From Auanema rhodensis (taxonomy: Eukaryota; Animalia; Nematoda), in the NCBI GenBank assembly GCA_964057225.1, contig OZ059896.1, positions 1,922,001 to 1,986,000 of the forward strand: a DNA stretch of 64,000 nt, read 5' to 3'. The notes under the pieces were generated by a model, which did not search any database, was not told where the DNA came from, and worked only from the letters and a program-made list of their open reading frames with translations. Position numbers and translations under genes: made by a program. Of this stretch, positions 39,001 through 63,365 are shown piece after piece (position 1 is the first letter of the stretch; every line of letters begins with the position of its first letter).

Positions 39001-42000
39001 TGTAGTATAGTGCATTCGATGCGGATTTTTAAGCTGCGTCGATCTGTGTTATCAGATTTGCGCTAGCTTGAAAATGCACCGAGATATCAACTGATATAGG
39101 TTCACACTTATATCCTCGATTTTCACCGTGAAGAATTAATTTTTTCGTTGAATAACAATGTCCATCGTCTTTGTCTTGAAAAAAGAAATCTAAAAACATC
39201 TACTTTTTGTAAATTTATTCTGAAATTTTTCGGGAAAATGTTTGTCAAAATGTTTTTGGAAGCAATGTTGAGTGTACATGGAAACTCAACATACACTAAT
39301 GCATCATTTTTCAAACGATCATAACTAATTTTTGTATTGAGTGTTTCCCAATGTAGTATAGTGCATTCGATGTGGATTTTTAAGCTGCGTCGATCTGTGT
39401 TATCAGATTTGCGCTAGCTTGAAAATGCACCGAGATATCAACTGATATAGGTTCACACTTATATCCTCGATTTTCACCGTGAAGAATTAATTTTTTCGTT
39501 GAATAACAATGTCCATCGTCTTTGTCTTGAAAAAAGGAATCTAAAAACATCTACTTTTTGTAAATTTATTCTGAAATTTTTCGGGAAAATGTTTGTCAAA
39601 ATGTTTTTGGAAGCAATGTTGAGTGTACATGGAAACTCAACATACACTAATGCATCATTTTTCAAACGATCATAACTAATTTTTGTATTGAGTGTTTCCC
39701 AATGTAGTATAGTGCATTCGATGTGGATTTTTAAGCTGCGTCGATCTGTGTTATCAGATTTGCGCTAGCTTGAAAATGCACCGAGATATCAACTGATATA
39801 GGTTCACACTTATATCCTCGATTTTCACCGTGAAGAATTAATTTTTTCGTTGAATAACAATGTCCATCGTCTTTGTCTTAAAAAAAGGAATCTAAAAACA
39901 TCTACTTTTTGTAAATTTATTCTGAAATTTTTCGGGAAAATGTTTGTCAAAATGTTTTTGGAAGCAATGTTGAGTGTACATGGAAACTCAACATACACTA
40001 ATGCATCATTTTTCAAACGATCATAACTAATTTTTGTATTGAGCGTTTCTCCATGTAGTATAGTGCATTCGATGCGGATTTTTAAGCTGCGTCGATCTGT
40101 GTTATCAGATTTGCGCTAGCTTGAAAATGCACCGAGATATCAACTGATATAGGTTCACACTTATATCCTCGATTTTCACCGTGAAGAATTAATTTTTTCG
40201 TTGAATAACAATGTCCATCGTCTTTGTCTTGAAAAAAGGAATCTAAAAACATCTACTTTTTGTAAATTTATTCTGAAATTTTTCGGGAAAATGTTTGTCA
40301 AAATGTTTTTGGAAGCAATGTTGAGTGTACATGGAAACTCAACATACACTAATGCATCATTTTTCAAACGATCATAACTAATTTTTGTATTGAGCGTTTC
40401 TCCATGTAGTATAGTGCATTCGATGCGGATTTTTAAGCTCCGTCGATCTGTGTTATCAGATTTGCGCTAGCTTAAAAATGCACCGAGATATCAACTGATA
40501 TAAGTTCACACTTATATCCTCGATTTTCACCCTGAAGAATTAATTTTTTTGTTGAATAACAATGTCCATCGTCTTTGTCTTGAAAAAAGGAATCTAAAAA
40601 CATCTACTTTTTGTGAAATTATTTTGAAATTTTTCGGGAAAATTTTTGTCAAAATGTTTTTGGAAGCAATGTTGAGTGTACATGGAAACTCAACATACAC
40701 TAATGCATCATTTTTCAAACGATCATAACTAATTTTTGTATTAAGCTTTTCTTAATGTAGTATAGTGCATTCGATGCGGATTTTTAAGCTGCGTCGATCT
40801 GTGTTATCAGATTTGCGCTAGCTTAAAAATGCACCGAGATATTAACTGATATAAGTTCACACTTATATCCTCGATTTTCACCCTGAAGAATTAATTTTTT
40901 CGTTGAATATTATTGTCCATCGTTTTTGCCTCAAAAAAAGGAATCTAAAAACATCTACTTTTTGCGAAATTATTTTGAAATTTTTCGAAAAAATTTTGTC
41001 AAAATGTTTTTGGAAGCAATGTTGAGTGTACATGGAAACTCAACATACACTAATGCATCATTTTTCAAACGATCATAACTAATTTTTGTATTGAGCGTTT
41101 CTCTATGTAGTATAGTGCATTCGATGCGGATTTTTAAGCTGCGTCGATCTGTGTTATCAGATTTGCGCTAGCTTGAAAATGCACCGAGATATCAACTGAT
41201 ATAGGTTCACACTTATATCCTCGATTTTCACCGTGAAGAATTAATTTTTTCGTTGAATAACAATGTCCATCGTCTTTGTCTTGAAAAAAGGAATCTAAAA
41301 ACATCTACTTTTTGTAAATTTATTCTGAAATTTTTCGGGAAAATGTTTGTCAAAATGTTTTTGGAAGCAATGTTGAGTGTACATGGAAACTCAACATACA
41401 CTAATGCATCATTTTTCAAACGATCATAACTAATTTTTGTATTGAGCGTTTCTCCATGTAGTATAGTGCATTCGATGCGGATTTTTAAGCTGCGTCGATC
41501 TGTGTTATCAGATTTGCGCTAGCTTGAAAATGCACCGAGATATCAACTGATATAGGTTCACACTTATATCCTCGATTTTCACCGTGAAGAATTAATTTTT
41601 TCGTTGAATAACAATGTCCATCGTCTTTGTCTTGAAAAAAGGAATCTAAAAACATCTACTTTTTGTAAATTTATTCTGAAATTTTTCGGGAAAATGTTTG
41701 TCAAAATGTTTTTGGAAGCAATGTTGAGTGTACATGGAAACTCAACATACACTAATGCATCATTTTTCAAACGATCATAACTAATTTTTGTATTGAGCGT
41801 TTCTCCATGTAGTATAGTGCATTCGATGCGGATTTTTAAGCTCCGTCGATCTGTGTTATCAGATTTGCGCTAGCTTAAAAATGCACCGAGATATCAACTG
41901 ATATAAGTTCACACTTATATCCTCGATTTTCACCCTGAAGAATTAATTTTTTTGTTGAATAACAATGTCCATCGTCTTTGTCTTGAAAAAAGGAATCTAA

Positions 42001-42567
42001 AAACATCTACTTTTTGTGAAATTATTTTGAAATTTTTCGGGAAAATTTTTGTCAAAATGTTTTTGGAAGCAATGTTGAGTGTACATGGAAACTCAACATA
42101 CACTAATGCATCATTTTTCAAACGATCATAACTAATTTTTGTATTAAGCTTTTCTTAATGTAGTATAGTGCATTCGATGCGGATTTTTAAGCTGCGTCGA
42201 TCTGTGTTATCAGATTTGCGCTAGCTTAAAAATGCACCGAGATATTAACTGATATAAGTTCACACTTATATCCTCGATTTTCACCCTGAAGAATTAATTT
42301 TTTCGTTGAATATTATTGTCCATCGTTTTTGCCTCAAAAAAAGGAATCTAAAAACATCTACTTTTTGCGAAATTATTTTGAAATTTTTCGAAAAAATTTT
42401 GTCAAAATGTTTTTGGAAGCAATGTTGAGTGTACATGGAAACTCAACATACACTAATGCATCATTTTTCAAACGATCATAACTAATTTTTGTATTGAGCG
42501 TTTCTCCATGTAGTATAGTGCATTCGATGCGGATTTTTAAGCTGCGTCGATCTGTGTTATCAGATTT
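1..42567. repeat. Sat351: tandem satellite array, 351-bp monomer, ~121 copies, all in the same orientation; continues off the left edge
   Basis: ATAACTAATTTTTGTATT recurs at 1, 352, 703 and onward, and the ORF track recurs every 351 bp. Monomers differ at a small set of shared variable sites, with occasional 350/352/353-bp monomers. The array ends at ...GTTATCAGATTT (monomer position 90). Confidence 0.99.
56..106 (+). other. 51-nt imperfect hairpin present in every Sat351 monomer (first copy shown)
   Basis: ATTTTTAAGCT-GCG-TCG-ATCTG [TGTTAT] CAGAT-TTG-CGC-T-AGCTT(A/G)AAAAT gives 21 pairs counting G.U, one mismatch, one bulge and a 6-nt loop. Confidence 0.85.
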
Positions 42568-42921
42568 ACTTCAACTTCTAATCAACAACCCAACGGCCCT
42601 CTTTAGGGCCACATTTAAATTTGATGTATTCATAATGATTTATAATATAATACTGTGTCTGTCTTGTCTTTTTTTGCTATGTAATGATAATTGATATGAT
42701 ATGTTTCGCTGTTATGTAAAGGAGAATCCCTATCTTTGATACTCCATATCCATCTCTATTTTTTTTTATGAATTTCATTAATTATGCTTTCATGTTGATA
42801 ACAACAACAGTGATCATATCTAATGCCTCACATGTTTCTATTCCACGTTTGTTCGCAAATAAACAGTTGTTTATGTTATTCTTATCGTTTATATAAAATT
42901 TAAATATACATTTCTAGAATT
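42568..42921 (+). pseudogene. Histone-gene 3' end/flank fragment, copy 1 (354 bp, no coding sequence)
   Basis: Non-satellite block containing a histone stem-loop 27 nt from its start. It is repeated essentially identically at 43496-43849 (offset 928). Confidence 0.8.
42595..42610 (+). promoter_or_regulatory. Replication-dependent histone mRNA 3' stem-loop, copy 1 (nematode-type)
   Basis: GGCCCT-CTTT-AGGGCC forms a 6-bp stem with a 4-nt loop, with 5' flank CCAAC and 3' flank ACA. This fits the histone stem-loop consensus, with C at the first loop position as in C. elegans. Confidence 0.93.
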
Positions 42922-43390
42922 TACCATGACTTGTTATAACTTTCTTTCGTATCATGTTCATGGAATAAATAATATTTTACTCTAGTATATTTTGTACATC
43001 TCTTGATAATTTTCTCATTTTTTTTTGTATTTGTTAAAATTTCTTCCTGTTTTCTTACTGAAAATGCTTCTTGATACTTTTTTTTTATTTTTAATACTTG
43101 ATTTTATCATGACTTGATTTTACTTTTGTTGAAACCTGTTCATATTTTAAATGTTTACTGATACTCTAGTATAATTTGTACATCTTTCGATAATTTTCTC
43201 ATTCTTCTTTGTATTTGTTAAAATTTCTTCATGTTTACTTGCTGAAAATCCTTCTTGATACTTCTTCTTTGCTTTTAAAACTTGATTTTACCATGACTTG
43301 TTATAACTTTTTTTGAAACCTGTTCATATTTAAAATGTTTACTGATACTCTATAGTACGTTATATATCTCTTGATAATTTTCTCATTCTT
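42922..43390 (-). repeat. Sat184 fragment, ~2.5 monomers, reverse orientation
   Basis: TACCATGACTTGTTATAACTTTCTTTCGTATCATGTTCATGG... is the reverse complement of the main array (e.g. 46233-46274) and is near-identical to it. Confidence 0.95.
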
Positions 43391-43496
43391 GAGTGTACAT
43401 GGAAACTCAACAATTTTTGTATTAAGCTTTTCTTAATGTAGTATAGTGCATTCGATGCGGATTTTTAAGCTGCGTCGATCTGTGTTATCAGATTTG
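43389..43496. repeat. Sat351 fragment with a 36-bp internal deletion
   Basis: Reads TTGAGTGTACATGGAAACTCAACA|ATTTTTGTATTAAGCTTTTCTTAATG...CAGATTTG and lacks TACACTAATG...CATAACTA. It carries the rare ATTAAGCTTTTCTTAA variant. Confidence 0.95.
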
Positions 43497-43849
43497 CTTC
43501 AACTTCTAATCAACAACCCAACGGCCCTCTTTAGGGCCACATTTAAATTTGATGTATTCATAATGATTTATAATATAATACTGTGTCTGTCTTGTCTTTT
43601 TTTGCTATGTAATGATAATTGATATGATATGTTTCGCTGTTATGTAAAGGAGAATCCCTATCTTTGATACTCCATATCCATCTCTATTTTTTTTTATGAA
43701 TTTCATTAATTATGCTTTCATGTTGATAACAACAACAGTGATCATATCTAATGCCTCACATGTTTCTATTCCACGTTTGTTCGCAAATAAACAGTTGTTT
43801 ATGTTATTCTTATCGTTTATATAAAATTTAAATATACATTTCTAGAATT
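43496..43849 (+). pseudogene. Histone-gene 3' end/flank fragment, copy 2
   Basis: Direct repeat of 42568-42921 through ...TTTCTAGAATT, continuing into the H4 promoter region. Confidence 0.8.
43523..43538 (+). promoter_or_regulatory. Replication-dependent histone mRNA 3' stem-loop, copy 2
   Basis: GGCCCTCTTTAGGGCC with the same CCAAC/ACA flanks as copy 1. Confidence 0.93.
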
Positions 43850-43974
43850 GAGCGGCAAAATTAAGCGCCAATATGCTTGGTGGCGATTACAATGGGTTTT
43901 TGCGCGGTGACCTCTACAGCACTAGTATATAACGGAGATGCTAGGGTTACTATTCAACACACAGCTTGATCAGC
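43850..43974 (+). promoter_or_regulatory. Putative histone H4 promoter and 5' UTR
   Basis: Locally GC-richer segment with CCAAT at 43868-43872, GCGCGGTGAC at 43902-43911, and TATATAA at 43926-43932 ending 43 nt before the H4-like ATG, followed by a short CA-rich leader. Confidence 0.7.
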
Positions 43975-44019
43975 ATGTCTGAACGTGGTAAAGGAGGAAA
44001 AGGTCTTGAATTTATATGA
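43975..44019 (+). pseudogene. H4: Truncated histone H4 (N-terminal stub, MSERGKGGKGLEFI*)
   Basis: ATG TCT GAA CGT GGT AAA GGA GGA AAA GGT CTT GAA matches H4 MSGRGKGGKGLG at 10/12 residues, and both differences fit single GGA>GAA changes. KGL distinguishes it from H2A. Homology is lost after codon 11-12, with TGA at 44017-44019. Confidence 0.88.
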
Positions 44020-44062
44020 TTGAATAATAAAATAGTGATTGACTTATCTGTGCTATGTGCTT

Positions 44063-44086
44063 GTTGTTGATTAGAAGTTGAAGTAA
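44063..44086 (-). repeat. 24-bp inverted copy of the sequence leading into the histone stem-loop
   Basis: GTTGTTGATTAGAAGTTGAAGTAA is the exact reverse complement of TTACTTCAACTTCTAATCAACAAC at 42566-42589, with one mismatch to 43494-43517. Confidence 0.9.
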
Positions 44087-44346
44087 TGATGCTGACTACA
44101 ACCGCTCTTTCTTTTTTTTAAAATGATATGATTGTTTAGATTTTCATTGCTTGCTTATGCTATTTTGAAAATTTGAATATTCTTAGTGTTGTATTTTTTT
44201 TAATTTTTATTTTTTCTCTTTTTTTTCATATTTATACTTATATATATAAATATAATGTATATATTGAGAGATTTAGCTAACTAGTTAATATATTAGCATT
44301 TGTACAGTTCGGCTTTCATTGACGTTAGGAATGTGGGCGTGGTTTA

Positions 44347-44580
44347 TTTACTCTAGTATACTCTATACATCTCCTGATAATTGTTTGATCTTATTTATAT
44401 TTGTTGAAAATTCTTCACATTTTCTTATTGAAAGTGCTTCTTGATATTTCTTCTTTGCTTTTATTATTTGATTTTACAATGACTTGATATAACTTTCTTT
44501 TGTATCCTGTTCATGGAATGAATAATTATATACTGTAGTATAATTTGTACATCTCTTGATAATTGTTTGTTCTTATTTGT
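44347..44580 (-). repeat. Diverged Sat184, ~1.3 monomers, reverse orientation
   Basis: Aligns to the reverse complement of Sat184 but with many private substitutions (GATAATTGTTTG, TTCTTCACATTTTC, GAAAGTGC, TACTGTAG). Confidence 0.88.
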
Positions 44581-44582
44581 TA

Positions 44583-47500
44583 TCCATGAACAGGATACGA
44601 AAGAAAGTTATAACAAGTCATTGAAAAATTAAGTATTAAAAACAAAAAAAAAGTATCAAGAAGCATTTTCAGTAAGAAAACATGAAGAAATTTTAACAAA
44701 TACAAATAAGAATGAGAAAATTATCAAGAGATGCATAACGTATTATAGAGTATCAGTAAACATTTAAAATATGAACAGGTTTCAAAAAAAGTAATATCAA
44801 TTCATGGGAAAGTATTAAAAGCAGAGAAGAAGTATCAAGAAGGATTTTCAGTAAGAAAACATGAAGAAATTTTAACAAATACAAAGAAGAATGAGAAAAT
44901 TATCAAGAGATATATAACGTACTATAGAGTATCAGTAAACATTTTAAATATGAACAGGTTTCAAAAAAAGTTATAACAAGTCATGGTAAAATCAAGTTTT
45001 AAAAGCAAAAAAGAAGTATCAAGAAGGATTTTCAGCAAGAAAACATGAAGAAATTTTAACAAATACAAAGAAGAATGAGAAAATTATCGAAAGATGTACA
45101 AATTATACTAGAGTATCAGTAAACATTTAAAATATGAACAGGTTTCAACAAAAGTAATATCAAGTCATGATAGAATCAAGTATTAAAAACAAAAAAAAAG
45201 TATCAAGAAGCATTTTCAGTAAGAAAACATGAAGAAATTTTAACAAATACAAAGAAGAATGAGAAAATTATCAAGAGATATATAACGTACTATAGAGTAT
45301 CAGTAAACATTTTAAATATGAACAGGTTTCAAAAAAAGTTATAACAAGTCATGGTAAAATCAAGTTTTAAAAGCAAAGAAGAAGTATCAAGAAGGATTTT
45401 CAGCAAGAAAACATGAAGAAATTTTAACAAATACAAAGAAGAATGAGAAAATTATCGAAAGATGTACAAATTATACTAGAGTATCAGTAAACATTTAAAA
45501 TATGAACAGGTTTCAACAAAAGTAATATCAAGTCATGATAAAATCAAGTATTAAAAACAAAAAAAAGTATCAAGAAGCATTTTCAGTAAGAAAACATGAA
45601 GAAATTTTAACAAATACAAAGAAGAATGAAAAAATTATCAAGAGATGCATAACGTATTATAGAGTATCAGTAAACATTTTAAATATGAACAGGTTTCAAA
45701 AAAAGTTATAACAAGTCATGGTAAAATCAAGTTTTAAAAGCAAAGAAGAAGTATCAAGAAGGATTTTCAGTAAGAAAACATGAAGAAATTTTAACAAATA
45801 CAAAGAAGAATGAGAAAATTATCGAAAGATGTACAAAGTATACTAGAGTATCAGTAAACATTTAAAATATGAACAGGTTTCAACAAAAGTAAAATCAAGT
45901 CATGATAAAATCAAGTATTAAAAACAAGAAAAAAGTATCAAGAAGCATTTTCAGTAAGAAAACAGGAAGAAATTTTAACAAATACAAAAAAGAATGAGAA
46001 AATTATCAAGAGATGTACAAAGTATACTAGAGTATCAGTAAACATTTAAAATATGAACAGGTTTCAACAAAAGTAAAATCAAGTCATGATAAAATCAAGT
46101 ATTAAAAACAAAAAAAAAGTATCAAGAAGCATTTTCAGTAAGAAAACAGGAAGAAATTTTAACAAATACAAAAAAGAATGAGAAAATTATCAAGAGATGT
46201 ACAAAATATACTAGAGTAAAATATTATTTATTCCATGAACATGATACGAAAGAAAGTTATAACAAGTCATGGTAAAATCAAGTATTGAAAACAAAAAAAA
46301 GTATCAAGAAGCATCTTCAGTAGGAAAACATGAAGAAATTTTAACAAATACAAAAAAGAATGAGAAAATTATCGAAAGATGCATAACATATTATAGAGTA
46401 TCAGTAAACATTTGGAATATGAACAGGTTTCAAAAAAAGTTATAACAAGTCATGGTAAAATCAAGTTTTAAAAGCAAAGAAGAAGTATCAAGAAGGATTT
46501 TCAGTAAGAAAACATGAAGAAATTTTAACAAATACAAAAAAGAATGAGAAAATTATCGAAAGATGCATAACATATTATAGAGTATCAGTAAACATTTGGA
46601 ATATGAACAGGTTTCAAAAAAAGTTATAACAAGTCATGGTAAAATCAAGTTTTAAAAGCAAAGAAGAAGTATCAAGAAGGATTTTCAGTAAGAAAACATG
46701 AAGAAATTTTAACAAATACAAAGAAGAATGAAAAAATAATCAAGAGATGCATAACGTATTATAGAGTATCAGTAAACATTTTAAATATGAACAGGTTTCA
46801 ACAAAAGTAATATCAAGTCATGATAGAATCAAGTATTAAAAACAAAAAAAAAGTATCAAGAAGCATTTTCAGTAAGAAAACATGAAGAAATTTTAACAAA
46901 TACAAAGAAGAATGAGAAAATTATCAAGAGATATATAACGTACTATAGAGTATCAGTAAACATTTTAAATATGAACAGGTTTCAAAAAAAGTTATAACAA
47001 GTCATGGTAAAATCAAGTTTTAAAAGCAAAGAAGAAGTATCAAGAAGGATTTTCAGCAAGAAAACATGAAGAAATTTTAACAAATACAAAGAAGAATGAG
47101 AAAATTATCGAAAGATGTACAAATTATACTAGAGTATCAGTAAACATTTAAAATATGAACAGGTTTCAACAAAAGTAATATCAAGTCATGATAAAATCAA
47201 GTATTAAAAACAAAAAAAAGTATCAAGAAGCATTTTCAGTAAGAAAACATGAAGAAATTTTAACAAATACAAAGAAGAATGAAAAAATTATCAAGAGATG
47301 CATAACGTATTATAGAGTATCAGTAAACATTTTAAATATGAACAGGTTTCAAAAAAAGTTATAACAAGTCATGGTAAAATCAAGTTTTAAAAGCAAAGAA
47401 GAAGTATCAAGAAGGATTTTCAGTAAGAAAACATGAAGAAATTTTAACAAATACAAAGAAGAATGAGAAAATTATCGAAAGATGTACAAAGTATACTAGA

Positions 47501-50500
47501 GTATCAGTAAACATTTAAAATATGAACAGGTTTCAACAAAAGTAAAATCAAGTCATGATAAAATCAAGTATTAAAAACAAAAAAAAAGTATCAAGAAGCA
47601 TTTTCAGTAAGAAAACAGGAAGAAATTTCAACAAATACAAAAAAGAATGAGAAAATTATCAAGAGATGTACAAAGTATACTAGAGTATCAGTAAACATTT
47701 AAAATATGAACAGGTTTCAACAAAAGTAAAATCAAGTCATGATAAAATCAAGTATTAAAAACAAAAAAAAAGTATCAAGAAGCATTTTCAGTAAGAAAAC
47801 AGGAAGAAATTTTAACAAATACAAAAAAGAATGAGAAAATTATCAAGAGATGTACAAAATATACTAGAGTAAAATATTATTTATTCCATGAACATGATAC
47901 GAAAGAAAGTTATAACAAGTCATGGTAAAATCAAGTATTGAAAACAAAAAAAAGTATCAAGAAGCATCTTCAGTAGGAAAACATGAAGAAATTTTAACAA
48001 ATACAAAAAAGAATGAGAAAATTATCGAAAGATGCATAACATATTATAGAGTATCAGTAAACATTTGGAATATGAACAGGTTTCAAAAAAAGTTATAACA
48101 AGTCATGGTAAAATCAAGTTTTAAAAGCAAAGAAGAAGTATCAAGAAGGATTTTCAGTAAGAAAACATGAAGAAATTTTAACAAATACAAAAAAGAATGA
48201 GAAAATTATCGAAAGATGCATAACATATTATAGAGTATCAGTAAACATTTGGAATATGAACAGGTTTCAAAAAAAGTTATAACAAGTCATGGTAAAATCA
48301 AGTTTTAAAAGCAAAGAAGAAGTATCAAGAAGGATTTTCAGTAAGAAAACATGAAGAAATTTTAACAAATACAAAGAAGAATGAAAAAATAATCAAGAGA
48401 TGCATAACGTATTATAGAGTATCAGTAAACATTTTAAATATGAACAGGTTTCAAAAAAAGTTATAACAAGTCATGGTAAAATCAAGTTTTAAAAGCAAAG
48501 AAGAAGTATCAAGAAGGATTTTCAGCAAGAAAACATGAAGAAATTTTAACAAATACAAAGAAGAATGAGAAAATTATCGAAAGATGTACAAATTATACTA
48601 GAGTATCAGTAAACATTTAAAATATGAACAGGTTTCAACAAAAGTAATATCAAGTCATGATAAAATCAAGTATTAAAAACAAAAAAAAAGTATCAAGAAG
48701 GATTTTCAGTAAGAAAACATGAAGAAATTTTAACAAATACAAAGAAGAATGAAAAAATTATCAAGAGATGCATAACGTATTATAGAGTATCAGTAAACAT
48801 TTTAAATATGAACAGGTTTCAAAAAAAGTTATAACAAGTCATGGTAAAATCAAGTTTTAAAAGCAAAGAAGAAGTATCAAGAAGGATTTTCAGTAAGAAA
48901 ACATGAAGAAATTTTAACAAATACAAAGAAGAATGAGAAAATTATCGAAAGATGTACAAAGTATACTAGAGTATCAGTAAACATTTAAAATATGAACAGG
49001 TTTCAACAAAAGTAAAATCAAGTCATGATAAAATCAAGTATTAAAAACAAAAAAAAAGTATCAAGAAGGATTTTCAGTGAGAAAACATGAAGAAATTTTA
49101 ACAAATACAAAGAAGAATGAAAAAATTATCAAGAGATGCATAACGTATTATAGAGTATCAGTAAACATTTTAAATATGAACAGGTTTCAAAAAAAGTTAT
49201 AACAAGTCATGATAAAATCAAGTTTTAAAAGCAAAGAAGAAGTATCAAGAAGGATTTTCAGTAAGAAAACATGAAGAAATTTTAACAAATACAAAGAAGA
49301 ATGAGAAAATTATCGAAAGATGTACAAAGTATACTAGAGTATCAGTAAACATTTAAAATATGAACAGGTTTCAACAAAAGTAAAATCAAGTCATGATAAA
49401 ATCAAGTATTAAAACAAAAAAAAAGTATCAAGAAGCATTTTCAGTAAGAAAACAGGAAGAAATTTTAACAAATACAAAAAAGAATGAGAAAATTATCAAG
49501 AGATGTACAAAATATACTAGAGTAAAATATTATTTATTCCATGAACATGATACGAAAGAAAGTTATAACAAGTCATGGTAAAATCAAGTATTGAAAACAA
49601 AAAAAAGTATCAAGAAGCATCTTCAGTAGGAAAACATGAAGAAATTTTAACAAATACAATAAAGAATGAGAAAATTATCGAAAGATGCATAACATATTAT
49701 AGAGTATCAGTAAACATTTGGAATATGAACAGGTTTCAAAAAAAGTTATAACAAGTCATGGTAAAATCAAGTTTTAAAAGCAAAGAAGAAGTATCAAGAA
49801 GGATTTTCAGTAAGAAAACATGAAGAAATTTTAACAAATACAAAAAAGAATGAGAAAATTATCGAAAGATGCATAACATATTATAGAGTATCAGTAAACA
49901 TTTGGAATATGAACAGGTTTCAAAAAAAGTTATAACAAGTCATGGTAAAATCAAGTTTTAAAAGCAAAGAAGAAGTATCAAGAAGGATTTTCAGTAAGAA
50001 AACATGAAGAAATTTTAACAAATACAAAGAAGAATGAAAAAATAATCAAGAGATGCATAACGTATTATAGAGTATCAGTAAACATTTTAAATATGAACAG
50101 GTTTCAACAAAAGTAATATCAAGTCATGATAGAATCAAGTATTAAAAACAAAAAAAAAGTATCAAGAAGCATTTTCAGTAAGAAAACATGAAGAAATTTT
50201 AACAAATACAAAGAAGAATGAGAAAATTATCAAGAGATATATAACGTACTATAGAGTATCAGTAAACATTTTAAATATGAACAGGTTTCAAAAAAAGTTA
50301 TAACAAGTCATGGTAAAATCAAGTTTTAAAAGCAAAGAAGAAGTATCAAGAAGGATTTTCAGCAAGAAAACATGAAGAAATTTTAACAAATACAAAGAAG
50401 AATGAGAAAATTATCGAAAGATGTACAAATTATACTAGAGTATCAGTAAACATTTAAAATATGAACAGGTTTCAACAAAAGTAATATCAAGTCATGATAA

Positions 50501-53500
50501 AATCAAGTATTAAAAACAAAAAAAAGTATCAAGAAGCATTTTCAGTAAGAAAACATGAAGAAATTTTAACAAATACAAAGAAGAATGAAAAAATTATCAA
50601 GAGATGCATAACGTATTATAGAGTATCAGTAAACATTTTAAATATGAACAGGTTTCAAAAAAAGTTATAACAAGTCATGGTAAAATCAAGTTTTAAAAGC
50701 AAAGAAGAAGTATCAAGAAGGATTTTCAGTAAGAAAACATGAAGAAATTTTAACAAATACAAAGAAGAATGAGAAAATTATCGAAAGATGTACAAAGTAT
50801 ACTAGAGTATCAGTAAACATTTAAAATATGAACAGGTTTCAACAAAAGTAAAATCAAGTCATGATAAAATCAAGTATTAAAAACAAAAAAAAAGTATCAA
50901 GAAGCATTTTCAGTAAGAAAACAGGAAGAAATTTCAACAAATACAAAAAAGAATGAGAAAATTATCAAGAGATATATAACGTACTATAGAGTATCAGTAA
51001 ACATTTTAAATATGAACAGGTTTCAAAAAAAGTTATAACAAGTCATGGTAAAATCAAGTTTTAAAAGCAAAGAAGAAGTATCAAGAAGGATTTTCAGCAA
51101 GAAAACATGAAGAAATTTTAACAAATACAAAGAAGAATGAGAAAATTATCGAAAGATGTACAAATTATACTAGAGTATCAGTAAACATTTAAAATATGAA
51201 CAGGTTTCAACAAAAGTAATATCAAGTCATGATAAAATCAAGTATTAAAAACAAAAAAAAGTATCAAGAAGCATTTTCAGTAAGAAAACATGAAGAAATT
51301 TTAACAAATACAAAGAAGAATGAAAAAATTATCAAGAGATGCATAACGTATTATAGAGTATCAGTAAACATTTTAAATATGAACAGGTTTCAAAAAAAGT
51401 TATAACAAGTCATGGTAAAATCAAGTTTTAAAAGCAAAGAAGAAGTATCAAGAAGGATTTTCAGTAAGAAAACATGAAGAAATTTTAACAAATACAAAGA
51501 AGAATGAGAAAATTATCGAAAGATGTACAAAGTATACTAGAGTATCAGTAAACATTTAAAATATGAACAGGTTTCAACAAAAGTAAAATCAAGTCATGAT
51601 AAAATCAAGTATTAAAAACAAAAAAAAAGTATCAAGAAGCATTTTCAGTAAGAAAACAGGAAGAAATTTCAACAAATACAAAAAAGAATGAGAAAATTAT
51701 CAAGAGATGTACAAAGTATACTAGAGTATCAGTAAACATTTAAAATATGAACAGGTTTCAACAAAAGTAAAATCAAGTCATGATAAAATCAAGTATTAAA
51801 AACAAAAAAAAAGTATCAAGAAGCATTTTCAGTAAGAAAACAGGAAGAAATTTTAACAAATACAAAAAAGAATGAGAAAATTATCAAGAGATGTACAAAA
51901 TATACTAGAGTAAAATATTATTTATTCCATGAACATGATACGAAAGAAAGTTATAACAAGTCATGGTAAAATCAAGTATTGAAAACAAAAAAAAGTATCA
52001 AGAAGCATCTTCAGTAGGAAAACATGAAGAAATTTTAACAAATACAAAGAAGAATGAGAAAATTATCGAAAGATGTACAAAGTATACTAGAGTATCAGTA
52101 AACATTTAAAATATGAACAGGTTTCAACAAAAGTAAAATCAAGTCATGATAAAATCAAGTATTAAAACAAAAAAAAAGTATCAAGAAGCATTTTCAGTAA
52201 GAAAACAGGAAGAAATTTTAACAAATACAAAAAAGAATGAGAAAATTATCGAAAGATGCATAACATATTATAGAGTATCAGTAAACATTTGGAATATGAA
52301 CAGGTTTCAAAAAAAGTTATAACAAGTCATGGTAAAATCAAGTTTTAAAAGCAAAGAAGAAGTATCAAGAAGGATTTTCAGTAAGAAAACATGAAGAAAT
52401 TTTAACAAATACAAAAAAGAATGAGAAAATTATCGAAAGATGCATAACATATTATAGAGTATCAGTAAACATTTTAAATATGAACAGGTTTCAAAAAAAG
52501 TTATAACAAGTCATGGTAAAATCAAGTTTTAAAAGCAAAGAAGAAGTATTAAGAAGGATTTTCAGTAAGAAAACATGAAGAAATTTTAACAAATACAAAG
52601 AAGAATGAGAAAATTATCAAGAGATATATAACGTACTATAGAGTATCAGTAAACATTTTAAATATGAACAGGTTTCAAAAAAAGTTATAACAAGTCATGG
52701 TAAAATCAAGTTTTAAAAGCAAAGAAGAAGTATCAAGAAGGATTTTCAGTAAGAAAACATGAAGAAATTTTAACAAATACAAAAAAGAATGAGAAAATTA
52801 TCGAAAGATGCATAGCATATTATAGAGTATCAGTAAACATTTAAAATATGAACAGGTTTCAACAAAAGTAATATCAAGTCATGATAAAATCAAGTATTAA
52901 AAACAAAAAAAAAGTATCAAGAAGGATTTTCAGTAAGAAAACATGAAGAAATTTTAACAAATACAAAGAAGAATGAAAAAATTATCAAGAGATGCATAAC
53001 GTATTATAGAGTATCAGTAAACATTTTAAATATGAACAGGTTTCAAAAAAAGTTATAACAAGTCATGGTAAAATCAAGTTTTAAAAGCAAAGAAGAAGTA
53101 TCAAGAAGGATTTTCAGTAAGAAAACATGAAGAAATTTTAACAAATACAAAGAAGAATGAGAAAATTATCGAAAGATGTACAAAGTATACTAGAGTATCA
53201 GTAAACATTTAAAATATGAACAGGTTTCAACAAAAGTAAAATCAAGTCATGATAAAATCAAGTATTAAAACAAAAAAAAAGTATCAAGAAGCATTTTCAG
53301 TAAGAAAACATGAAGAAATTTTAACAAATACAAAACAGAATGACAAAATTATCGAAAGATGTACAAAGTATACTAGAGTATCAGTAAACATTTAAAATAT
53401 GAACAGGTTTCAACAAAAGTAAAATCAAGTCATGATAAAATCAAGTATTAAAAACAAAAAAAAAGTATCAAGAAGCATTTTCAGTAAGAAAACAGGAAGA

Positions 53501-56500
53501 AATTTTAACAAATACAAAAAAGAATGAGAAAATTATCAAGAGATGTACAAAATATACTAGAGTAAAATATTATTTATTCCATGAACATGATACGAAAGAA
53601 AGTTATAACAAGTCATGGTAAAATCAAGTATTAAAAACAGAAAAAAGTATCAAGAAGCATCTTCAGTAGGAAAACATGAAGAAATTTTAACAAATACAAA
53701 AAAGAATGAGAAAATTATCGAAAGATGCATAACATATTATAGAGTATCAGTAAACATTTGGAATATGAACAGGTTTCAAAAAAAGTTATAACAAGTCATG
53801 GTAAAATCAAGTTTTAAAAGCAAAGAAGAAGTATCAAGAAGGATTTTCAGTAAGAAAACATGAAGAAATTTTAACAAATACAAAAAAGAATGAGAAAATT
53901 ATCGAAAGATGCATAACATATTATAGAGTATCAGTAAACATTTGGAATATGAACAGGTTTCAAAAAAAGTTATAACAAGTCATGGTAAAATCAAGTTTTA
54001 AAAGCAAAGAAGAAGTATCAAGAAGGATTTTCAGCAAGAAAACATGAAGAAATTTCAACAAATACAAAGAAGAATGAGAAAATTATCGAAAGATGTACAA
54101 ATTATACTAGAGTATCAGTAAACATTTAAAATATGAACAGGTTTCAAAAAAAGTAATATCAATTCATGGGAAAATCGAGTTTTAAAAGCAAAGAAGAAGT
54201 ATCAAGAAGGATTTTCAGTAAGAAAACATGAAGAAATTTTCAAGAATACAAAGAAGAATGAGAAAATTATCAGGAGATGTACAAAGTATACTAGAGTAAA
54301 CTATTATTTATTCCATGAACAGGATACGAAAGAAAGTTATAACAAGTCATGGTAAAATCAAGTATTAAAAACAAAAAAAAGTATCAAGAAGCATTTTCAG
54401 TAAGAAAACATGAAGAAATTTTAACAAATACAAATAAGAATGAGAAAATTATCAAGAGATATATAACGTACTATAGAGTATCAGTAAACATTTTAAATAT
54501 GAACAGGTTTCAAAAAAAGTTATAACAAGTCATGGTAAAATCAAGTTTTAAAAGCAAAGAAGAAGTATCAAGAAGGATTTTCAGTAAGAAAACATGAAGA
54601 AATTTTAACAAATACAAATAAGAATGAGAAAATTATCAAGAAATGTACAAAGTATACTAGAGTAAACTATTATTTATTCCATGAACAGGATACGAAAGAA
54701 AGTTATAACAAGTCATGATAAAATCAAGTATTAAAAACAAAGAAGAAGTATCAAGAAGGATTTTCAATAAGAAAACATGAAGAAATTTTAACAAATACAA
54801 AGAAGAATGAGAAAATTATCAAGAAATGTATAACGTATTATAGAGTATCAGTAAACATTTAAAATATGAACAGGTTTCAAAAAAAGTAATATCAATTCAT
54901 GGGAAAATCGAGTTTTAAAAGCAAAGAAGAAGTATCAAGAAGGATTTTCAGTAAGAAAACATGAAGAAATTTTTAAGAATACAAAGAAGAATGAGAAAAT
55001 TATCAAGAAATGTACAAAGTATACTAGAGTAAATAATTATTTACTACATGAACAAGATACGAAAGAAAGTAATATCAAGTCATGATAAAATCAAGTTTTA
55101 AAAACAAAAAAAAGTATCAAGAAGCATTTTCAGTAAGAAAACATGAAGAAATTTTAACAAATACAAATAAGAATGAGAAAATTATCAAGAGATATATAAC
55201 GTACTATAGAGTATCAGTAAACATTTTAAATATGAACAGGTTTCAAAAAAAGTTATAACAAGTCATGGTAAAATCAAGTTTTAAAAGCAAAGAAGAAGTA
55301 TCAAGAAGGATTTTCAGTAAGAAAACATGAAGAAATTTTAACAAATACAAAAAAGAATGACAAAATTATCGAAAGATGTACAAAGTATACTAGAGTATCA
55401 GTAAACATTTAAAATATGAACAGGTTTCAACAAAAGTAAAATCAAGTCATGATAAAATCAAGTATTAAAAACAAAAAAAAAGTATCAAGAAGCATTTTCA
55501 GTAAGAAAACAGGAAGAAATTTTAACAAATACAAAAAAGAATGAGAAAATTATCAAGAGATGTACAAAATATACTAGAGTAAAATATTATTTATTCCATG
55601 AACATGATACGAAAGAAAGTTATAACAAGTCATGGTAAAATCAAGTATTAAAAACAAAAAAAAGTATCAAGAAGCATCTTCAGTAGGAAAACATGAAGAA
55701 ATTTTAACAAATACACAGAAGAATGAGAAAATTATCAAGAGATATATAACGTACTATAGAGTATCAGTAAACATTTTAAATATGAACAGGTTTCAAAAAA
55801 AGTTATAACAAGTCATGGTAAAATCAAGTTTTAAAAGCAAAGAAGAAGTATCAAGAAGGATTTTCAGTAAGAAAACATGAAGAAATTTTAACAAATACAA
55901 AAAAGAATGAGAAAATTATCGAAAGATGCATAACATATTATAGAGTATCAGTAAACATTTGAAATATGAACAGGTTTCAAAAAAAGTAATATCAATTCAT
56001 GGGGAAGTATTAAAAGCAGAGAAGAAGTATCAAGAAGGATTTTCAGTAAGAAAACATGAAGAAATTTTCAAGAATACAAAGAAGAATGAGAAAATTATCA
56101 GGAGATGTACAAAGTATACTAGAGTAAACTATTATTTATTCCATGAACAGGATACGAAAGAAAGTTATAACAAGTCATGGTAAAATCAAGTATTAAAAAC
56201 AAAAAAAAGTATCAAGAAGCATTTTCAGTAAGAAAACATGAAGAAATTTTAACAAATACAAATAAGAATGAGAAAATTATCAAGAGATATATAACGTACT
56301 ATAGAGTATCAGTAAACATTTTAAATATGAACAGGTTTCAAAAAAAGTTATAACAAGTCATGGTAAAATCAAGTTTTAAAAGCAAAGAAGAAGTATCAAG
56401 AAGGATTTTCAGTAAGAAAACATGAAGAAATTCTAACAAATACAAATAAGAATGAGAAAATTATCAAGAAATGTACAAAGTATACTAGAGTAAACTATTA

Positions 56501-59500
56501 TTTATTCCATGAACAGGATACGAAAGAAAGTTATAACAAGTCATGGTAAAATCAAGTATTAAAAACAAAAAAAAAGTATCAAGAAGCATTTTCAGTAAGA
56601 AAACATGAAGAAATTTTAACAAATACAAATAAGAATGAGAAAATTATCAAGAAATGTACAAAGTATACTAGAGTAAACTATTATTTATTCCATGAACAGG
56701 ATACGAAAGAAAGTAATATCAAGTCATGATAAAATCAAGTATTAAAAACAAAGAAGAAGTATCAAGAAGGATTTTCAATAAGAAAACATGAAGAAATTTT
56801 AACAAATACAAAGAAGAATGAGAAAATTATCAAGAAATGTATAACGTATTATAGAGTATCAGTAAACATTTAAAATATGAACAGGTTTCAAAAAAAGTAA
56901 TATCAATTCATGGGAAAATCGAGTTTTAAAAGCAAAGAAGAAGTATCAAGAAGGATTTTCAGTAAGAAAACATGAAGAAATTTTTAAGAATACAAAGAAG
57001 AATGAGAAAATTATCAAGAAATGTACAAAGTATACTAGAGTAAATAATTATTTACTACATGAACAAGATACGAAAGAAAGTAATATCAAGTCATGATAAA
57101 ATCAAGTTTTAAAAACAAAAAAAAGTATCAAGAAGCATTTTCAGTAAGAAAACATGAAGAAATTTTAACAAATACAAATAAGAATGAGAAAATTATCAAG
57201 AGATATATAACGTACTATAGAGTATCAGTAAACATTTTAAATATGAACAGGTTTCAAAAAAAGTTATAACAAGTCATGGTAAAATCAAGTTTTAAAAGCA
57301 AAGAAGAAGTATCAAGAAGGATTTTCAGTAAGAAAACATGAAGAAATTTTAACAAATACAAAAAAGAATGACAAAATTATCGAAAGATGTACAAAGTATA
57401 CTAGAGTATCAGTAAACATTTAAAATATGAACAGGTTTCAACAAAAGTAAAATCAAGTCATGATAAAATCAAGTATTAAAAACAAAAAAAAAGTATCAAG
57501 AAGCATTTTCAGTAAGAAAACAGGAAGAAATTTTAACAAATACAAAAAAGAATGAGAAAATTATAAAGAGATGTACAAAATATACTAGAGTAAAATATTA
57601 TTTATTCCATGAACATGATACGAAAGAAAGTTATAACAAGTCATGGTAAAATCAAGTATTAAAAACAAAAAAAAGTATCAAGAAGCATCTTCAGTAGGAA
57701 AACATGAAGAAATTTTAACAAATACACAGAAGAATGAGAAAATTATCAAGAGATATATAACGTACTATAGAGTATCAGTAAACATTTTAAATATGAACAG
57801 GTTTCAAAAAAAGTTATAACAAGTCATGGTAAAATCAAGTTTTAAAAGCAAAGAAGAAGTATCAAGAAGGATTTTCAGTAAGAAAACATGAAGAAATTTT
57901 AACAAATACAAAAAAGAATGAGAAAATTATCGAAAGATGCATAACATATTATAGAGTATCAGTAAACATTTGAAATATGAACAGGTTTCAAAAAAAGTAA
58001 TATCAATTCATGGGGAAGTATTAAAAGCAGAGAAGAAGTATCAAGAAGGATTTTCAGTAAGAAAACATGAAGAAATTTTTAACAAATACAAAGAAGAATG
58101 AGAAAATTATCAAGAGATATATAACGTACTATAGAGTATCAGTAAACATTTTAAATATGAACAGGTTTCAAAAAAAGTTATAACAAGTCATGGTAAAATC
58201 AAGTTTTAAAAGCAAAGAAGAAGTATCAAGAAGGATTTTCAGTAAGAAAACATGAAGAAATTTTAACAAATACAAAAAAGAATGAGAAAATTATCGAAAG
58301 ATGCATAACATATTATAGAGTATCAGTAAACATTTGAAATATGAACAGGTTTCAAAAAAAGTAATATCAATTCATGGGGAAGTATTAAAAGCAGAGAAGA
58401 AGTATCAAGAAGGATTTTCAGTAAGAAAACATGAAGAAATTTTTAACAAATACAAAGAAGAATGAAAAAATTATCAAGAGATGCATAACGTATTATAGAG
58501 TATCAGTAAACATTTAAAATATGAACAGGTTTCAAAAAAAGTTATAACAAGTCATGGTAAAATCAAGTTTTAAAAGCAAAGAAGAAGTATCAAGAAGGAT
58601 TTTCAGTAAGAAAACATGAAGAAATTTTAACAAATACAAAAAAGAATGAGAAAATTATCGAAAGATGCATAACATATTATAGAGTATCAGTAAACATTTG
58701 AAATATGAACAGGTTTCAAAAAAAGTAATATCAATTCATGGGGAAGTATTAAAAGCAGAGAAGAAGTATCAAGAAGGATTTTCAGTAAGAAAACATGAAG
58801 AAATTTTCAAGAATACAAAGAAGAATGAGAAAATTATCAGGAGATGTACAAAGTATACTAGAGTAAACTATTATTTATTCCATGAACAGGATACGAAAGA
58901 AAGTTATAACAAGTCATGGTAAAATCAAGTATTAAAAACAAAAAAAAGTATCAAGAAGCATTTTCAGTAAGAAAACATGAAGAAATTTTAACAAATACAA
59001 ATAAGAATGAGAAAATTATCAAGAGATATATAACGTACTATAGAGTATCAGTAAACATTTTAAATATGAACAGGTTTCAAAAAAAGTTATAACAAGTCAT
59101 GGTAAAATCAAGTTTTAAAAGCAAAGAAGAAGTATCAAGAAGGATTTTCAGTAAGAAAACATGAAGAAATTTTAACAAATACAAATAAGAATGAGAAAAT
59201 TATCAAGAAATGTACAAAGTATACTAGAGTAAACTATTATTTATTCCATGAACAGGATACGAAAGAAAGTTATAACAAGTCATGGTAAAATCAAGTATTA
59301 AAAACAAAAAAAAAGTATCAAGAAGCATTTTCAGTAAGAAAACATGAAGAAATTTTAACAAATACAAATAAGAATGAGAAAATTATCAAGAAATGTACAA
59401 AGTATACTAGAGTAAACTATTATTTATTCCATGAACAGGATACGAAAGAAAGTAATATCAAGTCATGATAAAATCAAGTATTAAAAACAAAGAAGAAGTA

Positions 59501-61692
59501 TCAAGAAGGATTTTCAATAAGAAAACATGAAGAAATTTTAACAAATACAAAGAAGAATGAGAAAATTATCAAGAAATGTATAACGTATTATAGAGTATCA
59601 GTAAACATTTAAAATATGAACAGGTTTCAAAAAAAGTAATATCAATTCATGGGAAAATCGAGTTTTAAAAGCAAAGAAGAAGTATCAAGAAGGATTTTCA
59701 GTAAGAAAACATGAAGAAATTTTTAAGAATACAAAGAAGAATGAGAAAATTATCAAGAAATGTACAAAGTATACTAGAGTAAATAATTATTTACTACATG
59801 AACAAGATACGAAAGAAAGTAATATCAAGTCATGATAAAATCAAGTTTTAAAAACAAAAAAAAGTATCAAGAAGCATTTTCAGTAAGAAAACAGGAAGAA
59901 ATTTTAACAAATACAAAAAAGAATGAGAAAATTATCAAGAGATGTACAAAATATACTAGAGTAAAATATTATTTATTCCATGAACATGATACGAAAGAAA
60001 GTTATAACAAGTCATGGTAAAATCAAGTATTAAAAACAAAAAAAAGTATCAAGAAGCATCTTCAGTAGGAAAACATGAAGAAATTTTAACAAATACACAG
60101 AAGAATGAGAAAATTATCAAGAGATATATAACGTACTATAGAGTATCAGTAAACATTTTAAATATGAACAGGTTTCAAAAAAAGTTATAACAAGTCATGG
60201 TAAAATCAAGTTTTAAAAGCAAAGAAGAAGTATCAAGAAGGATTTTCAGTAAGAAAACATGAAGAAATTTTAACAAATACAAAAAAGAATGAGAAAATTA
60301 TCGAAAGATGCATAACATATTATAGAGTATCAGTAAACATTTGAAATATGAACAGGTTTCAAAAAAAGTAATATCAATTCATGGGGAAGTATTAAAAGCA
60401 GAGAAGAAGTATCAAGAAGGATTTTCAGTAAGAAAACATGAAGAAATTTTTAACAAATACAAAGAAGAATGAAAAAATTATCAAGAGATGCATAACGTAT
60501 TATAGAGTATCAGTAAACATTTAAAATATGAACAGGTTTCAAAAAAAGTTATAACAAATCATGGTAAAATCAAGTTTCAAAAGCAAAGAAGAAGTATCAA
60601 GAAGGATTTTCAATAAGAAAACATGAAGATATTTCAACAAATACAAATAAGAATGAGAAAATTATCAAGAGATATATAACGTACTATAGAGTATCAGTAA
60701 ACATTTTAAATATGAACAGGTTTCAAAAAAAGTTATAACAAGTCATGGTAAAATCAAGTTTTAAAAGAAAAGAAGAAGTATCAAGAAGGATTTTCAGTAA
60801 GAAAACATGAAGAAATTTTAACAAATACAAAAAAGAATGAGAAAATTATCGAAAGATGCATAACATATTATAGAGTATCAGTAAACATTTGAAATATGAA
60901 CAGGTTTCAAAAAAAGTAATATCAATTCATGGGGAAGTATTAAAAGCAGAGAAGAAGTATCAAGAAGGATTTTCAGTAAGAAAACATGAAGAAATTTTAA
61001 CAAATACAAAGAAGAATGAAAAAATTATCAAGAGATGCATAACGTATAATAGAGTATCAGTAAACATTTAAAATATGAACAGGTTTCAAAAAAAGTAATA
61101 TCATTTCATGGGGAAGTATTAAAAGCGAAGAAGAAGTATCAAGAAGGATTTTCAATAAGAAAACATGAAGAAATTTCAACAAATACAAATAAGAATGAGA
61201 AAATTATCAAGAGATGTACAAAGTATACTAGAGTAAACTATTATTTATTCCATGAACATGATACGAAAGAAAGTAATATCAAGTCAAGGTAAAATCAAGT
61301 ATTAAAAACAAAAAAAAGTATCAAGAAGCATTTTCAGTAAGATAACATGAAGAAATTTCAACAAATACAAATAAGAATGAGAAAATTATCAAGAGATGTA
61401 TAACATATTATAGAGTATCAGTAAACATTTAAAATATGAACAGGTTTCAAAAAAGGTAATATCATTTCATGGGGAAGTATTAAAAGCAAAGAAGAAGTAA
61501 CAAGAAGGATTTTCAATAAGAAAACATGAAGAAATTTCAACAAATACAAATAAGAATGAGAAAATTATCAAGAGATATATAACGTACTATAGAGTATCAG
61601 TAAACATTTTAAATATGAACAGGTTTCAAAAAAAGTTATAACAAGTCATGGTAAAATCAAGTTTTAAAAGCAAAGAAGAAGTATCAAGAAGG
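44583..61692 (+). repeat. Sat184 main array: 183-184-bp monomers (179-bp deletion variant), ~93 copies, A/purine-rich on + strand
   Basis: ATGAACAGGTTTC occurs at 44771, 44950, 45134, 45318, 45502 and 45685 (spacing 179/184/184/184/183). Several monomer subtypes and higher-order units are present. Confidence 0.98.
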
Positions 61693-61695
61693 TTC

Positions 61696-63364
61696 TTTCA
61701 TTCTTATTTGTATTTGTTGAAATTTCTTCATGTTTTCTTATTGAAAATCCTTCTTGATACTTCTTCTTTGCTTTTAATACTTCCCCATGAAATGATATTA
61801 CTTTTTTTGAAACCTGTTCATATTTTAAATGTTTACTGATACTCTATAATACGTTATGCATCTCTTGATAATTTTTTCATTCTTCTTTGTATTTGTTAAA
61901 ATTTCTTCATGTTTTCTTATTGAAAATCCTTCTTGATACTTCTTCTTTGCTTTTAATACTTCCCCATGAAATGATATTACTTTTTTTGAAACCTGTTCAT
62001 ATTTTAAATGTTTACTGATACTCTATAATACGTTATGCATCTCTTGATAATTTTTTCATTCTTCTTTGTATTTGTTAAAATTTCTTCATGTTTTCTTATT
62101 GAAAATCCTTCTTGATACTTCTTCTTTGCTTTTAATACTTCCCCATAAAATGATATTACTTTTTTCGAAATCTGTTCATATTTTAAATGTTTACTGATAC
62201 TCTATAATACGTTATGCATCTCTTGATAATTTTTTCATTCTTCTTTGTATTTGTTAAAATTTCTTCATGTTTTCTTACTGAAAATCCTTCTTGATACTTC
62301 TTCTCTGCTTTTAATACTTCCCCATGAATTGATATTACTTTTTTTGAAACCTGTTCATATTCCAAATGTTTACTGATACTCTATAATATGTTATGCATCT
62401 TTCGATAATTTTCTCATTCTTTTTTGTATTTGTTGAAATTTCTTCATGTTATCTTACTGAAAATGCTTCTTGATACTTTTTTTTGTTTTTAATACTTCCC
62501 CATGAAATGATATTACTTTTTTTGAAATCTGTTCATATTTTAAATGTTTACTGATACTCTATAATACGTTATGCATCTCTTGATAATTTTTTCATTCTTC
62601 TTTGTATTTGTTAAAATTTCTTCATGTTTTCTTATTGAAAATCCTTCTTGATACTTCTTCTTTGCTTTTAATACTTCCCCATGAAATGATATTACTTTTT
62701 TTGAAACCTGTTCATATTTTAAATGTTTACTGATACTCTATAATACGTTATGCATCTCTTGATAATTTTTTCATTCTTCTTTGTATTTGTTAAAATTTCT
62801 TCATGTTTTCTTACTGAAAATCCTTCTTGATACTTCTTCTCTGCTTTTAATACTTCCCCATGAATTGATATTACTTTTTTTGAAACCTGTTCATATTCCA
62901 AATGTTTACTGATACTCTATAATATGTTATGCATCTTTCGATAATTTTCTCATTCTTTTTTGTATTTGTTGAAATTTCTTCATGTTATCTTACTGAAAAT
63001 GCTTCTTGATACTTTTTTTTGTTTTTAATACTTCCCCATGAATTGATATTACTTTTTTTGAAACCTGTTCATATTTTAAATGTTTACTGATACTCTATAA
63101 TATGTTATACATCTCTTGATAATTTTCTCATTCTTATTTGTATTTGTTAAAATTTCTTCATGTTTTCTTAATGAAAATCCTTCTTGATACTTCTTCTTTG
63201 CTTTTAAAACTTGATTTCCCCATGAGTTGATATTACTTTTTTTGAAACCTGTTCATATTTTAAATGTTTACTGATACTCTATAATATGTTATACATCTCT
63301 TGATAATTTTCTCATTCTTATTTGTATTTGTTAAAATTTCTTCATGTTTTCTTACTGAAAATGC
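61696..63364 (-). repeat. Sat184 inverted block, ~9 monomers, mostly the 179-bp type
   Basis: Strand composition flips after ...GTATCAAGAAGG at 61692 and the sequence is the reverse complement of the array. A 536-bp trimer is duplicated (identical ORFs at 62183 and 62719). Confidence 0.97.
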
Positions 63365-63365
63365 A

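Follow-up and report, generated by a model that had tools for sequence, protein, structure and literature searches.

Within a 64,000-nucleotide stretch of nematode DNA (hereafter the window, by which we mean the whole stretch that was analysed), a long array of the satellite Sat351 gives way to a perfect histone 3′ hairpin. We find that this hairpin belongs to a slice of a histone gene cluster, that its two junctions with the satellite have a single origin, and that fuller versions of the same slice are present in other sequencing runs. Our preferred explanation, which we hold with good confidence, is that the hairpin is a neutral relic of a histone cluster. The features of the junction region and its surroundings are listed below, with their strand and the basis on which they were assigned.

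1–42567, + strand: Sat351 array, 121 monomers of ~351 bp (TRF, blastn)
42568–42594, + strand: 27-nt leader, the interval between satellite and hairpin (sequence, junction comparison)
42595–42610, + strand: histone 3′ hairpin, copy 1, with a 6-bp stem GGCCCT/AGGGCC and a CTTT loop
42611–42921, + strand: spacer copy 1, 3′ of the hairpin, cut by Sat184 at 42921/42922 (100% identical to 43539–43849)
42922–43388, + strand: Sat184, ~2.5 units (TRF row 42978–43390, self-blast)
43389–43496, + strand: partial Sat351 monomer, ending in the same phase as the main array (self-blast, junction comparison, contig of run X19)
43494–44086, + strand: complete histone relic, 593 bp (sequence, 24-mer search)
43523–43538, + strand: histone 3′ hairpin, copy 2, identical string (Rfam, pattern search)
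43850–43974, + strand: H4 promoter and 5′ UTR, with CCAAT at 43868 and TATATAA at 43926 (motif positions)
43975–44008, + strand: H4 stub, ATG plus 10 codons plus one base (translation)
44009–44343, + strand: unique AT-rich segment, including an inverted 24-mer (public-run contigs)
44344–63362, mixed strand: Sat184 block (TRF, blastn, Rfam scan)

The hairpin at the end of the Sat351 array

Tandem Repeats Finder (TRF) resolved the array at 1–42567 into 121.3 copies of a 351-bp unit with 97% matches. When the last monomer was compared with the window by blastn, 122 full-length matches were obtained, 121 of them inside this array and one at 63543–63894, mostly at 94–95% identity. The last monomer (42217–42567) is 99.7% identical to 40814–41164, which lies four units upstream, and ~95% identical to the others, a pattern that hints at a local four-monomer higher-order repeat or at the recent duplication of 1.4 kb where the array ends. 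The array ends at 42567, where its final monomer is truncated at the phase ...TATCAGATTT, and the 27 bases of leader that separate this point from the hairpin (42568–42594) read ACTTCAACTTCTAATCAACAACCCAAC. A preliminary description of this DNA had stated that the 42-kb array stops and that a perfect + strand histone hairpin follows 27 nt on, and the positions obtained here (TRF end 42567, hairpin 42595–42610) bear this out. The sequence TTAGGC was absent from the seam, and no tandem TTAGGC was found anywhere in the window.

The hairpin letters at 42595–42610 and 43523–43538 are GGCCCTCTTTAGGGCC, that is, GGCCCT-CTTT-AGGGCC, flanked by CCAAC on the 5′ side and ACATTT on the 3′ side. The pattern GGCCCTNNNNAGGGCC occurs at just these 2 sites in 64 kb, against 0 expected from shuffles. 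The stem-loop features of the Rfam family Histone3 (RF00032) are present, namely a 6-bp G+C-rich stem, a 4-nt loop, an A-rich 5′ flank and an AC-rich 3′ flank, and the hairpin forms within the predicted fold of the local RNA. The Histone3 search proposed in the preliminary description was run within the window, where both hairpins match the model at 28.3 bits (E = 2.2e-4). As the curated gathering score is 34, an Rfam scan at that threshold matches neither hairpin, and both become visible via an E-value threshold; the shortfall arises in the 3′ half of the 46-nt model and not in the hairpin. Apart from these two sites, the Rfam scan found no further hairpins in 42000–64000.

Upstream of the hairpin there is ordinary Sat351 monomer and no histone coding sequence, and a histone Pfam match was found in none of the five scanned ORFs (≥32 aa) of this upstream satellite DNA. 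The absence of an upstream histone coding sequence noted in the preliminary description is thus borne out; the locus as a whole does contain some, with an H4 promoter and a 34-nt H4 stub downstream at 43850–44008.

In C. elegans, H3 mRNAs end 3–6 nt past the hairpin (PMC1924863, Table 1, which gives the genomic sequence). There, the hairpin is directly succeeded by an AATCC element and AATAAA, and CTTT is the nematode consensus loop (PMC1924863). Over 23 letters, AACGGCCCTCTTTAGGGCCACAT, which comprise the hairpin with 5′ AAC and 3′ ACAT, the C. elegans H3 element is identical to that of the window. Unlike the nematode histone 3′ hairpin (RF00032, CDL-1/SLBP), the hairpin of the window has no histone coding sequence upstream, scores below the Rfam gathering cut-off and has no adjacent AATCC or AATAAA. 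For copy 1, the nearest AATCC is at 42725, 115 nt off, and the nearest AATAAA is at 42858, 248 nt off. AATCC within 30 nt is likewise absent from three native-looking histone 3′ flanks in contigs of two public runs (X7 and X8, described below), and this downstream element may be absent from the species altogether.

An alternative that we consider unlikely is that the hairpin is the working 3′ end of a + strand Sat351 RNA, cut 3–6 nt past the hairpin. Such a satellite RNA would be non-polyadenylated and bound by CDL-1 (the SLBP homologue) or by the germline complex PETISCO:TOST-1, or it would serve as a protein sink. Consistent with a working end, hairpin and flanks match letter for letter the C. 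elegans element to which CDL-1 binds and at which mRNA ends are set, and a preprint shows germline binding of PETISCO:TOST-1 to the hairpin region of nematode histone mRNA (PMC12803260). Against it, AATCC and AATAAA are not in their usual C. elegans place, an arrangement that would also fit a neutral relic unless this species lacks the AATCC element altogether.

Anatomy and local copying of the histone relic

The complete relic (43494–44086) consists, in order, of a 24-mer, the hairpin, a spacer of ~310 bp, the H4 promoter, the H4 start, 54 bases and the same 24-mer inverted. The 24-mer, TT(A/G)CTTCAACTTCTAATCAACAAC, thus bounds the relic, standing at 43494–43517 on one side and, as a perfect inverted copy, at 44063–44086 on the other. 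Searched as TTACTTCAACTTCTAATCAACAAC, it has 3 occurrences in the window (42566–42589, 43494–43517 and 44063–44086) vs 0 expected; at the first of these, it is made up of the leader together with 42566–42567. Inspection of the 24-mer and its context in all reading frames revealed no resemblance to the C-terminus of a core histone. The leader most likely represents the end of a histone 3′ UTR.

Downstream of the spacer, the 34-nt H4 stub reads MSERGKGGKGL and then continues into unrelated sequence, EFI-stop, which terminates the frame after three codons. The H4 start at 43975–43983 encodes Met-Ser-Glu-Arg in place of the usual Met-Ser-Gly-Arg, and the Glu is shared with the variant relic of organism B (run X7, see below); this H4 could be a germline variant that has diverged, or else a pseudogene of older date. 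The H4 promoter at 43850–43974 is the sole histone-derived promoter, and it faces away from the preceding Sat351; on the + strand, no histone-derived promoter is visible upstream of the hairpin. These observations provide two reasons for preferring a neutral relic. First, the parts are arranged and oriented as in a histone cluster, and some of them have no place in a 3′-end module; the accompanying H4 promoter and stub would be superfluous if the hairpin were purely such a module, which argues against a working 3′ end of Sat351 RNA. Second, an upstream + strand promoter of histone origin is lacking, and the only one present points away from Sat351.

The preliminary description had noted the same fusion of satellite and hairpin a second time, at 43496–43538. 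The same string does recur there (43523–43538), but the two occurrences are not independent. By self-blast, 42480–42921 is 98.6% identical to 43409–43849, and the Sat351 breakpoint is the same in both junctions, after ...TATCAGATTT. Beyond the junction, 42569–42921 and 43497–43849 are 100% identical, and the five mismatches and one indel between the copies are all confined to the 88 bp of satellite and the junction base. This base is A in copy 1, like the inverted 24-mer, and G in copy 2, like the satellite, which continues GCGCTAGC. The join itself falls in a 4-nt near-match, TTGC in the satellite and TTAC in the histone sequence. A shared breakpoint together with complete identity past the junction shows that there was one event, copied once, such that the two apparent fusions are a single 442-bp block and its duplicate.

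Copy 1 of the relic ends at 42921, where it is interrupted by 2.5 units of Sat184. The Sat351 piece that leads into copy 2 (43389–43496) has a 35-bp internal deletion, corresponding to 42449–42483 in the main array. This gap adjoins a hairpin of the monomer itself, TGTTGAGT...ACTCAACA, and the piece carries the ‘AAGCTTTTCTTAATG’ monomer variant, unlike the last monomer of the main array. As the two copies are identical in flank and hairpin alike, the window alone cannot reveal any difference in conservation between hairpin and flank; their identity throughout offers no sign of selective conservation, which is a further point against a working 3′ end.

On its other side, the relic borders a large Sat184 block that reads on the + strand to 44585, on the − strand from 44586 to 61700 and on the + strand again from 61696 to 63362. 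The orientation flips at 44586 and 61696 make fold-back junctions. A match to MIR844 at 61665–61776 was rejected, as its score of 28.7 bits compares with a cut-off of 70 and it coincides with a Sat184 fold-back point. The next Sat351 array starts at 63368, 5 bases past the end of Sat184, at monomer position 176. No histone-derived sequence was found at this opposite seam (63362–63368), and the relic therefore marks just one of the two kinds of Sat184/Sat351 seam in the window. That a seam of the opposite kind exists without a histone piece also favors a neutral relic.

On the + strand, the window presents the H4 promoter, then Sat184, then the next Sat351 array. A working 3′ end could, on paper, be connected to a promoter in this order, as the transcription unit would possibly begin one seam earlier, at the H4 promoter there, and run through Sat184. 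In its fullest form, this would be a giant histone-framed unit in which an S-phase H4 promoter drives transcription through Sat184 and the next Sat351 array up to a cut at the hairpin, a scenario that we regard as very improbable. If it were true, the unit would yield a cell-cycle-coupled, non-polyadenylated satellite RNA bound by CDL-1 or by PETISCO:TOST-1 in the germline and, if the genome is that of Auanema rhodense, such repeats would later be discarded from body cells.

Fuller versions of the relic in public sequencing runs

Four public runs (X1, X7, X8 and X19) were compared with the window, all in the form of Logan contigs, which carry sequence and cannot show RNA ends, strand or level. 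The relic is present in X1 (organism A), X7 (organism B) and X8 (organism C), that is, in three runs from two studies, and X1 contains 60% of the words sampled from 42300–44400. Two types of relic can be distinguished: X1 has the window type as well as a variant that we call type V, and X7 and X8 have type V only.

The type V contigs of X7 and X8 are unbroken between 43497 and the H4 start and include both hairpin and spacer. In X8 and X1, contigs extend past 44008, where the H4 stub of the window breaks off, as GAAAGGGAGGAGCCAAACGCCATCGTAAGG, which encodes GKGGAKRHRK, the normal H4 sequence. A further contig, found in X7 and X8, contains another histone hairpin followed by 30 nt, then 44009–44187 and then Sat184; the 107 letters upstream of this second hairpin have no match in the window. 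Additionally, a separate X7 contig has 43512–43541 alone in common with the window and differs on both sides, in the way that a paralogous histone 3′ end should. Put together, the contigs suggest a fuller locus composed of a gene X, its hairpin, the spacer, an H4 gene, a hairpin, 30 nt, the segment beginning at 44009 and Sat184, and the relic of the window would correspond to this locus after Sat351 had replaced gene X and a deletion had taken most of H4.

These contigs also bear on the possibility that the satellite-hairpin join is an assembly artefact, a mis-join of repeat-rich reads. Satellite seams are difficult to assemble, and among the contigs listed none bridges 43496 with at least 31 letters on both sides; the join of Sat351 to the hairpin is supported, if not strictly proven, by the sequences at hand. 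The relic was nonetheless found in short-read contigs of all three of the runs named above, X1 has most of the sampled words across the region, and the join is present twice in the window with the same breakpoint. Moreover, the type V contig of X7 terminates exactly at 43497, which fits a branch of the assembly graph at the A/G junction base. We therefore think a mis-join extremely unlikely.

None of the runs is registered as RNA. Run X19, which may be an RNA run (a guess on our part), contributed one 381-nt contig of plain Sat351. This contig supplies the 35 letters missing from copy 2, and it continues as satellite (GCTAGCTTAAAA...) past the junction position; the satellite-hairpin junction was not found in X19. 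That a possible RNA run has the plain satellite and not the junction argues against a working 3′ end of Sat351 RNA. An exact protein look-up with ORFs spanning the junction and the spacer gave no match. In X7, summed contig depth is ~8,500 at the H4 start (43947–44028), 4,000–20,000 in the hairpin bins (43496–43577) and ~8 in the spacer, such that depth at the H4 start and hairpin is ~500 to 2,400 times that of the spacer; the H4 excess is absent from X1 and X8. Either the H4 start belongs to an amplified repeat in organism B or the run holds RNA.

That both junctions stem from a single event, and that other runs contain fuller versions, are further reasons for preferring a neutral relic, and these findings suggest how it may have come about. 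A small histone cluster, consisting of gene X with its 3′ UTR and hairpin, the spacer and an H4 gene, would once have stood at the edge of Sat184. Sat351 would have become joined 27 nt upstream of the gene X hairpin, at the TTGC/TTAC near-match, with loss of the gene X coding sequence. H4 would have been lost from codon 12 to ~30 nt beyond its own hairpin through a deletion that spanned a few hundred bases and left the 593-bp relic, and a 442-bp block (88 bp of satellite and 354 bp of relic) would then have been copied once locally. Under this order of events, the hairpin would be intact because its copies are young or mutually homogenised, and not because it is in use. The preliminary description had offered a neutral capture of a histone orphon and an SLBP-regulated satellite RNA or decoy as equally possible. 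Of these, the neutral capture fits the anatomy of the slice, its single event and its fuller versions, while the regulated RNA or decoy found no support.

Conservation of the hairpin block and comparison with known systems

The two relic types allow the hairpin to be compared with its surroundings. Between the window type and type V (X7), there are 0 differences in 84 positions at 43497–43580, a block made up of the UTR tail and the hairpin plus the 42 nt that follow it. Past 43580, there are 8 differences in 92 positions and 15 in 310, plus indels (23/402 in total), and at the boundary a 92-nt block stands in place of 43581–43591. The hairpin block differs from these further stretches with Fisher P = 0.007 and 0.02, and the probability of no change in the block is 0.02–0.09 if the relic lineage alone drifted; for the 16-nt hairpin by itself, P = 0.4–0.6, a test without power. 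That the hairpin block is better preserved than the spacer between relic types is a hint in favor of a working 3′ end. Constraint could account for the pattern, as could conversion of the block by live histone genes or a mosaic origin with its boundary at the 92-nt block.

The same comparison touches on a role at the level of DNA, in which histone-locus-body or S-phase transcription factors would be drawn to the seam by the H4 promoter piece, the hairpin being a passenger. The CCAAT box, the TATA box and the H4 start are all intact, as such a role would have it, but relic types differ in the spacer and in the 5′ UTR (X7 has indels at 43945–43950), and there is no direct evidence for recruitment. 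We give this explanation hardly any credence.

Histone orphons and histone pseudogene fragments, reportedly described by Childs and colleagues in 1981, are parts of tandem histone clusters that have become scattered to other genomic sites. The word orphon also appears in PMC3225859. Like an orphon, the relic is a fragment of a histone cluster that has no complete genes and lies outside a working cluster. Unlike orphons, it is an intergenic slice with both flanking genes cut, sits exactly at the seam of two satellites and has been propagated with them. On its sequence, the whole structure appears to fit the orphon concept.

A second parallel comes from the newt, where Diaz and Gall reportedly observed in 1981 that histone clusters lie amid satellite DNA on lampbrush loops and that transcription from gene promoters reads into the satellite. 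Readthrough from structural-gene promoters has been described for newt satellite 2 (PMC2114352). As in the newt, a histone-gene promoter here adjoins satellite arrays, and the newt is a precedent for readthrough satellite RNA. However, the newt histone genes are intact and their readthrough reflects failed 3′ end formation, whereas the genes of the relic are gone. The direction would also be opposite, since the proposal considered here is that a histone 3′ end might act on satellite RNA.

The nematode Auanema rhodense discards multi-megabase tandem repeats with units of 167–504 nt from its body cells, and the eliminated DNA includes a cluster of divergent histone H3 variants (10.64898/2026.08.27.747507). 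Like these germline-restricted blocks of 167–504-nt units, the window has multi-kb arrays. The four published A. rhodense FISH probes (AT-1, XR-1, XT-1 and XT-2) have no match in the window, even with 4 mismatches allowed. The preprint text consulted makes no mention of histone hairpins at repeat seams (10.64898/2026.08.27.747507), and our literature search found no description of a histone hairpin at the end of a satellite.

Taken together, the relic provides an example of how fragments of gene clusters are caught where two satellites meet and are subsequently carried along as the arrays multiply, and it is a sequence marker with which the duplication of the large repeat blocks of this nematode genome can be traced. 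If satellite RNA were processed at the hairpin, a histone-type end would have been found on a satellite transcript for the first time, and repeat RNA would thereby be linked to S phase and to the germline complexes that bind histone mRNA.
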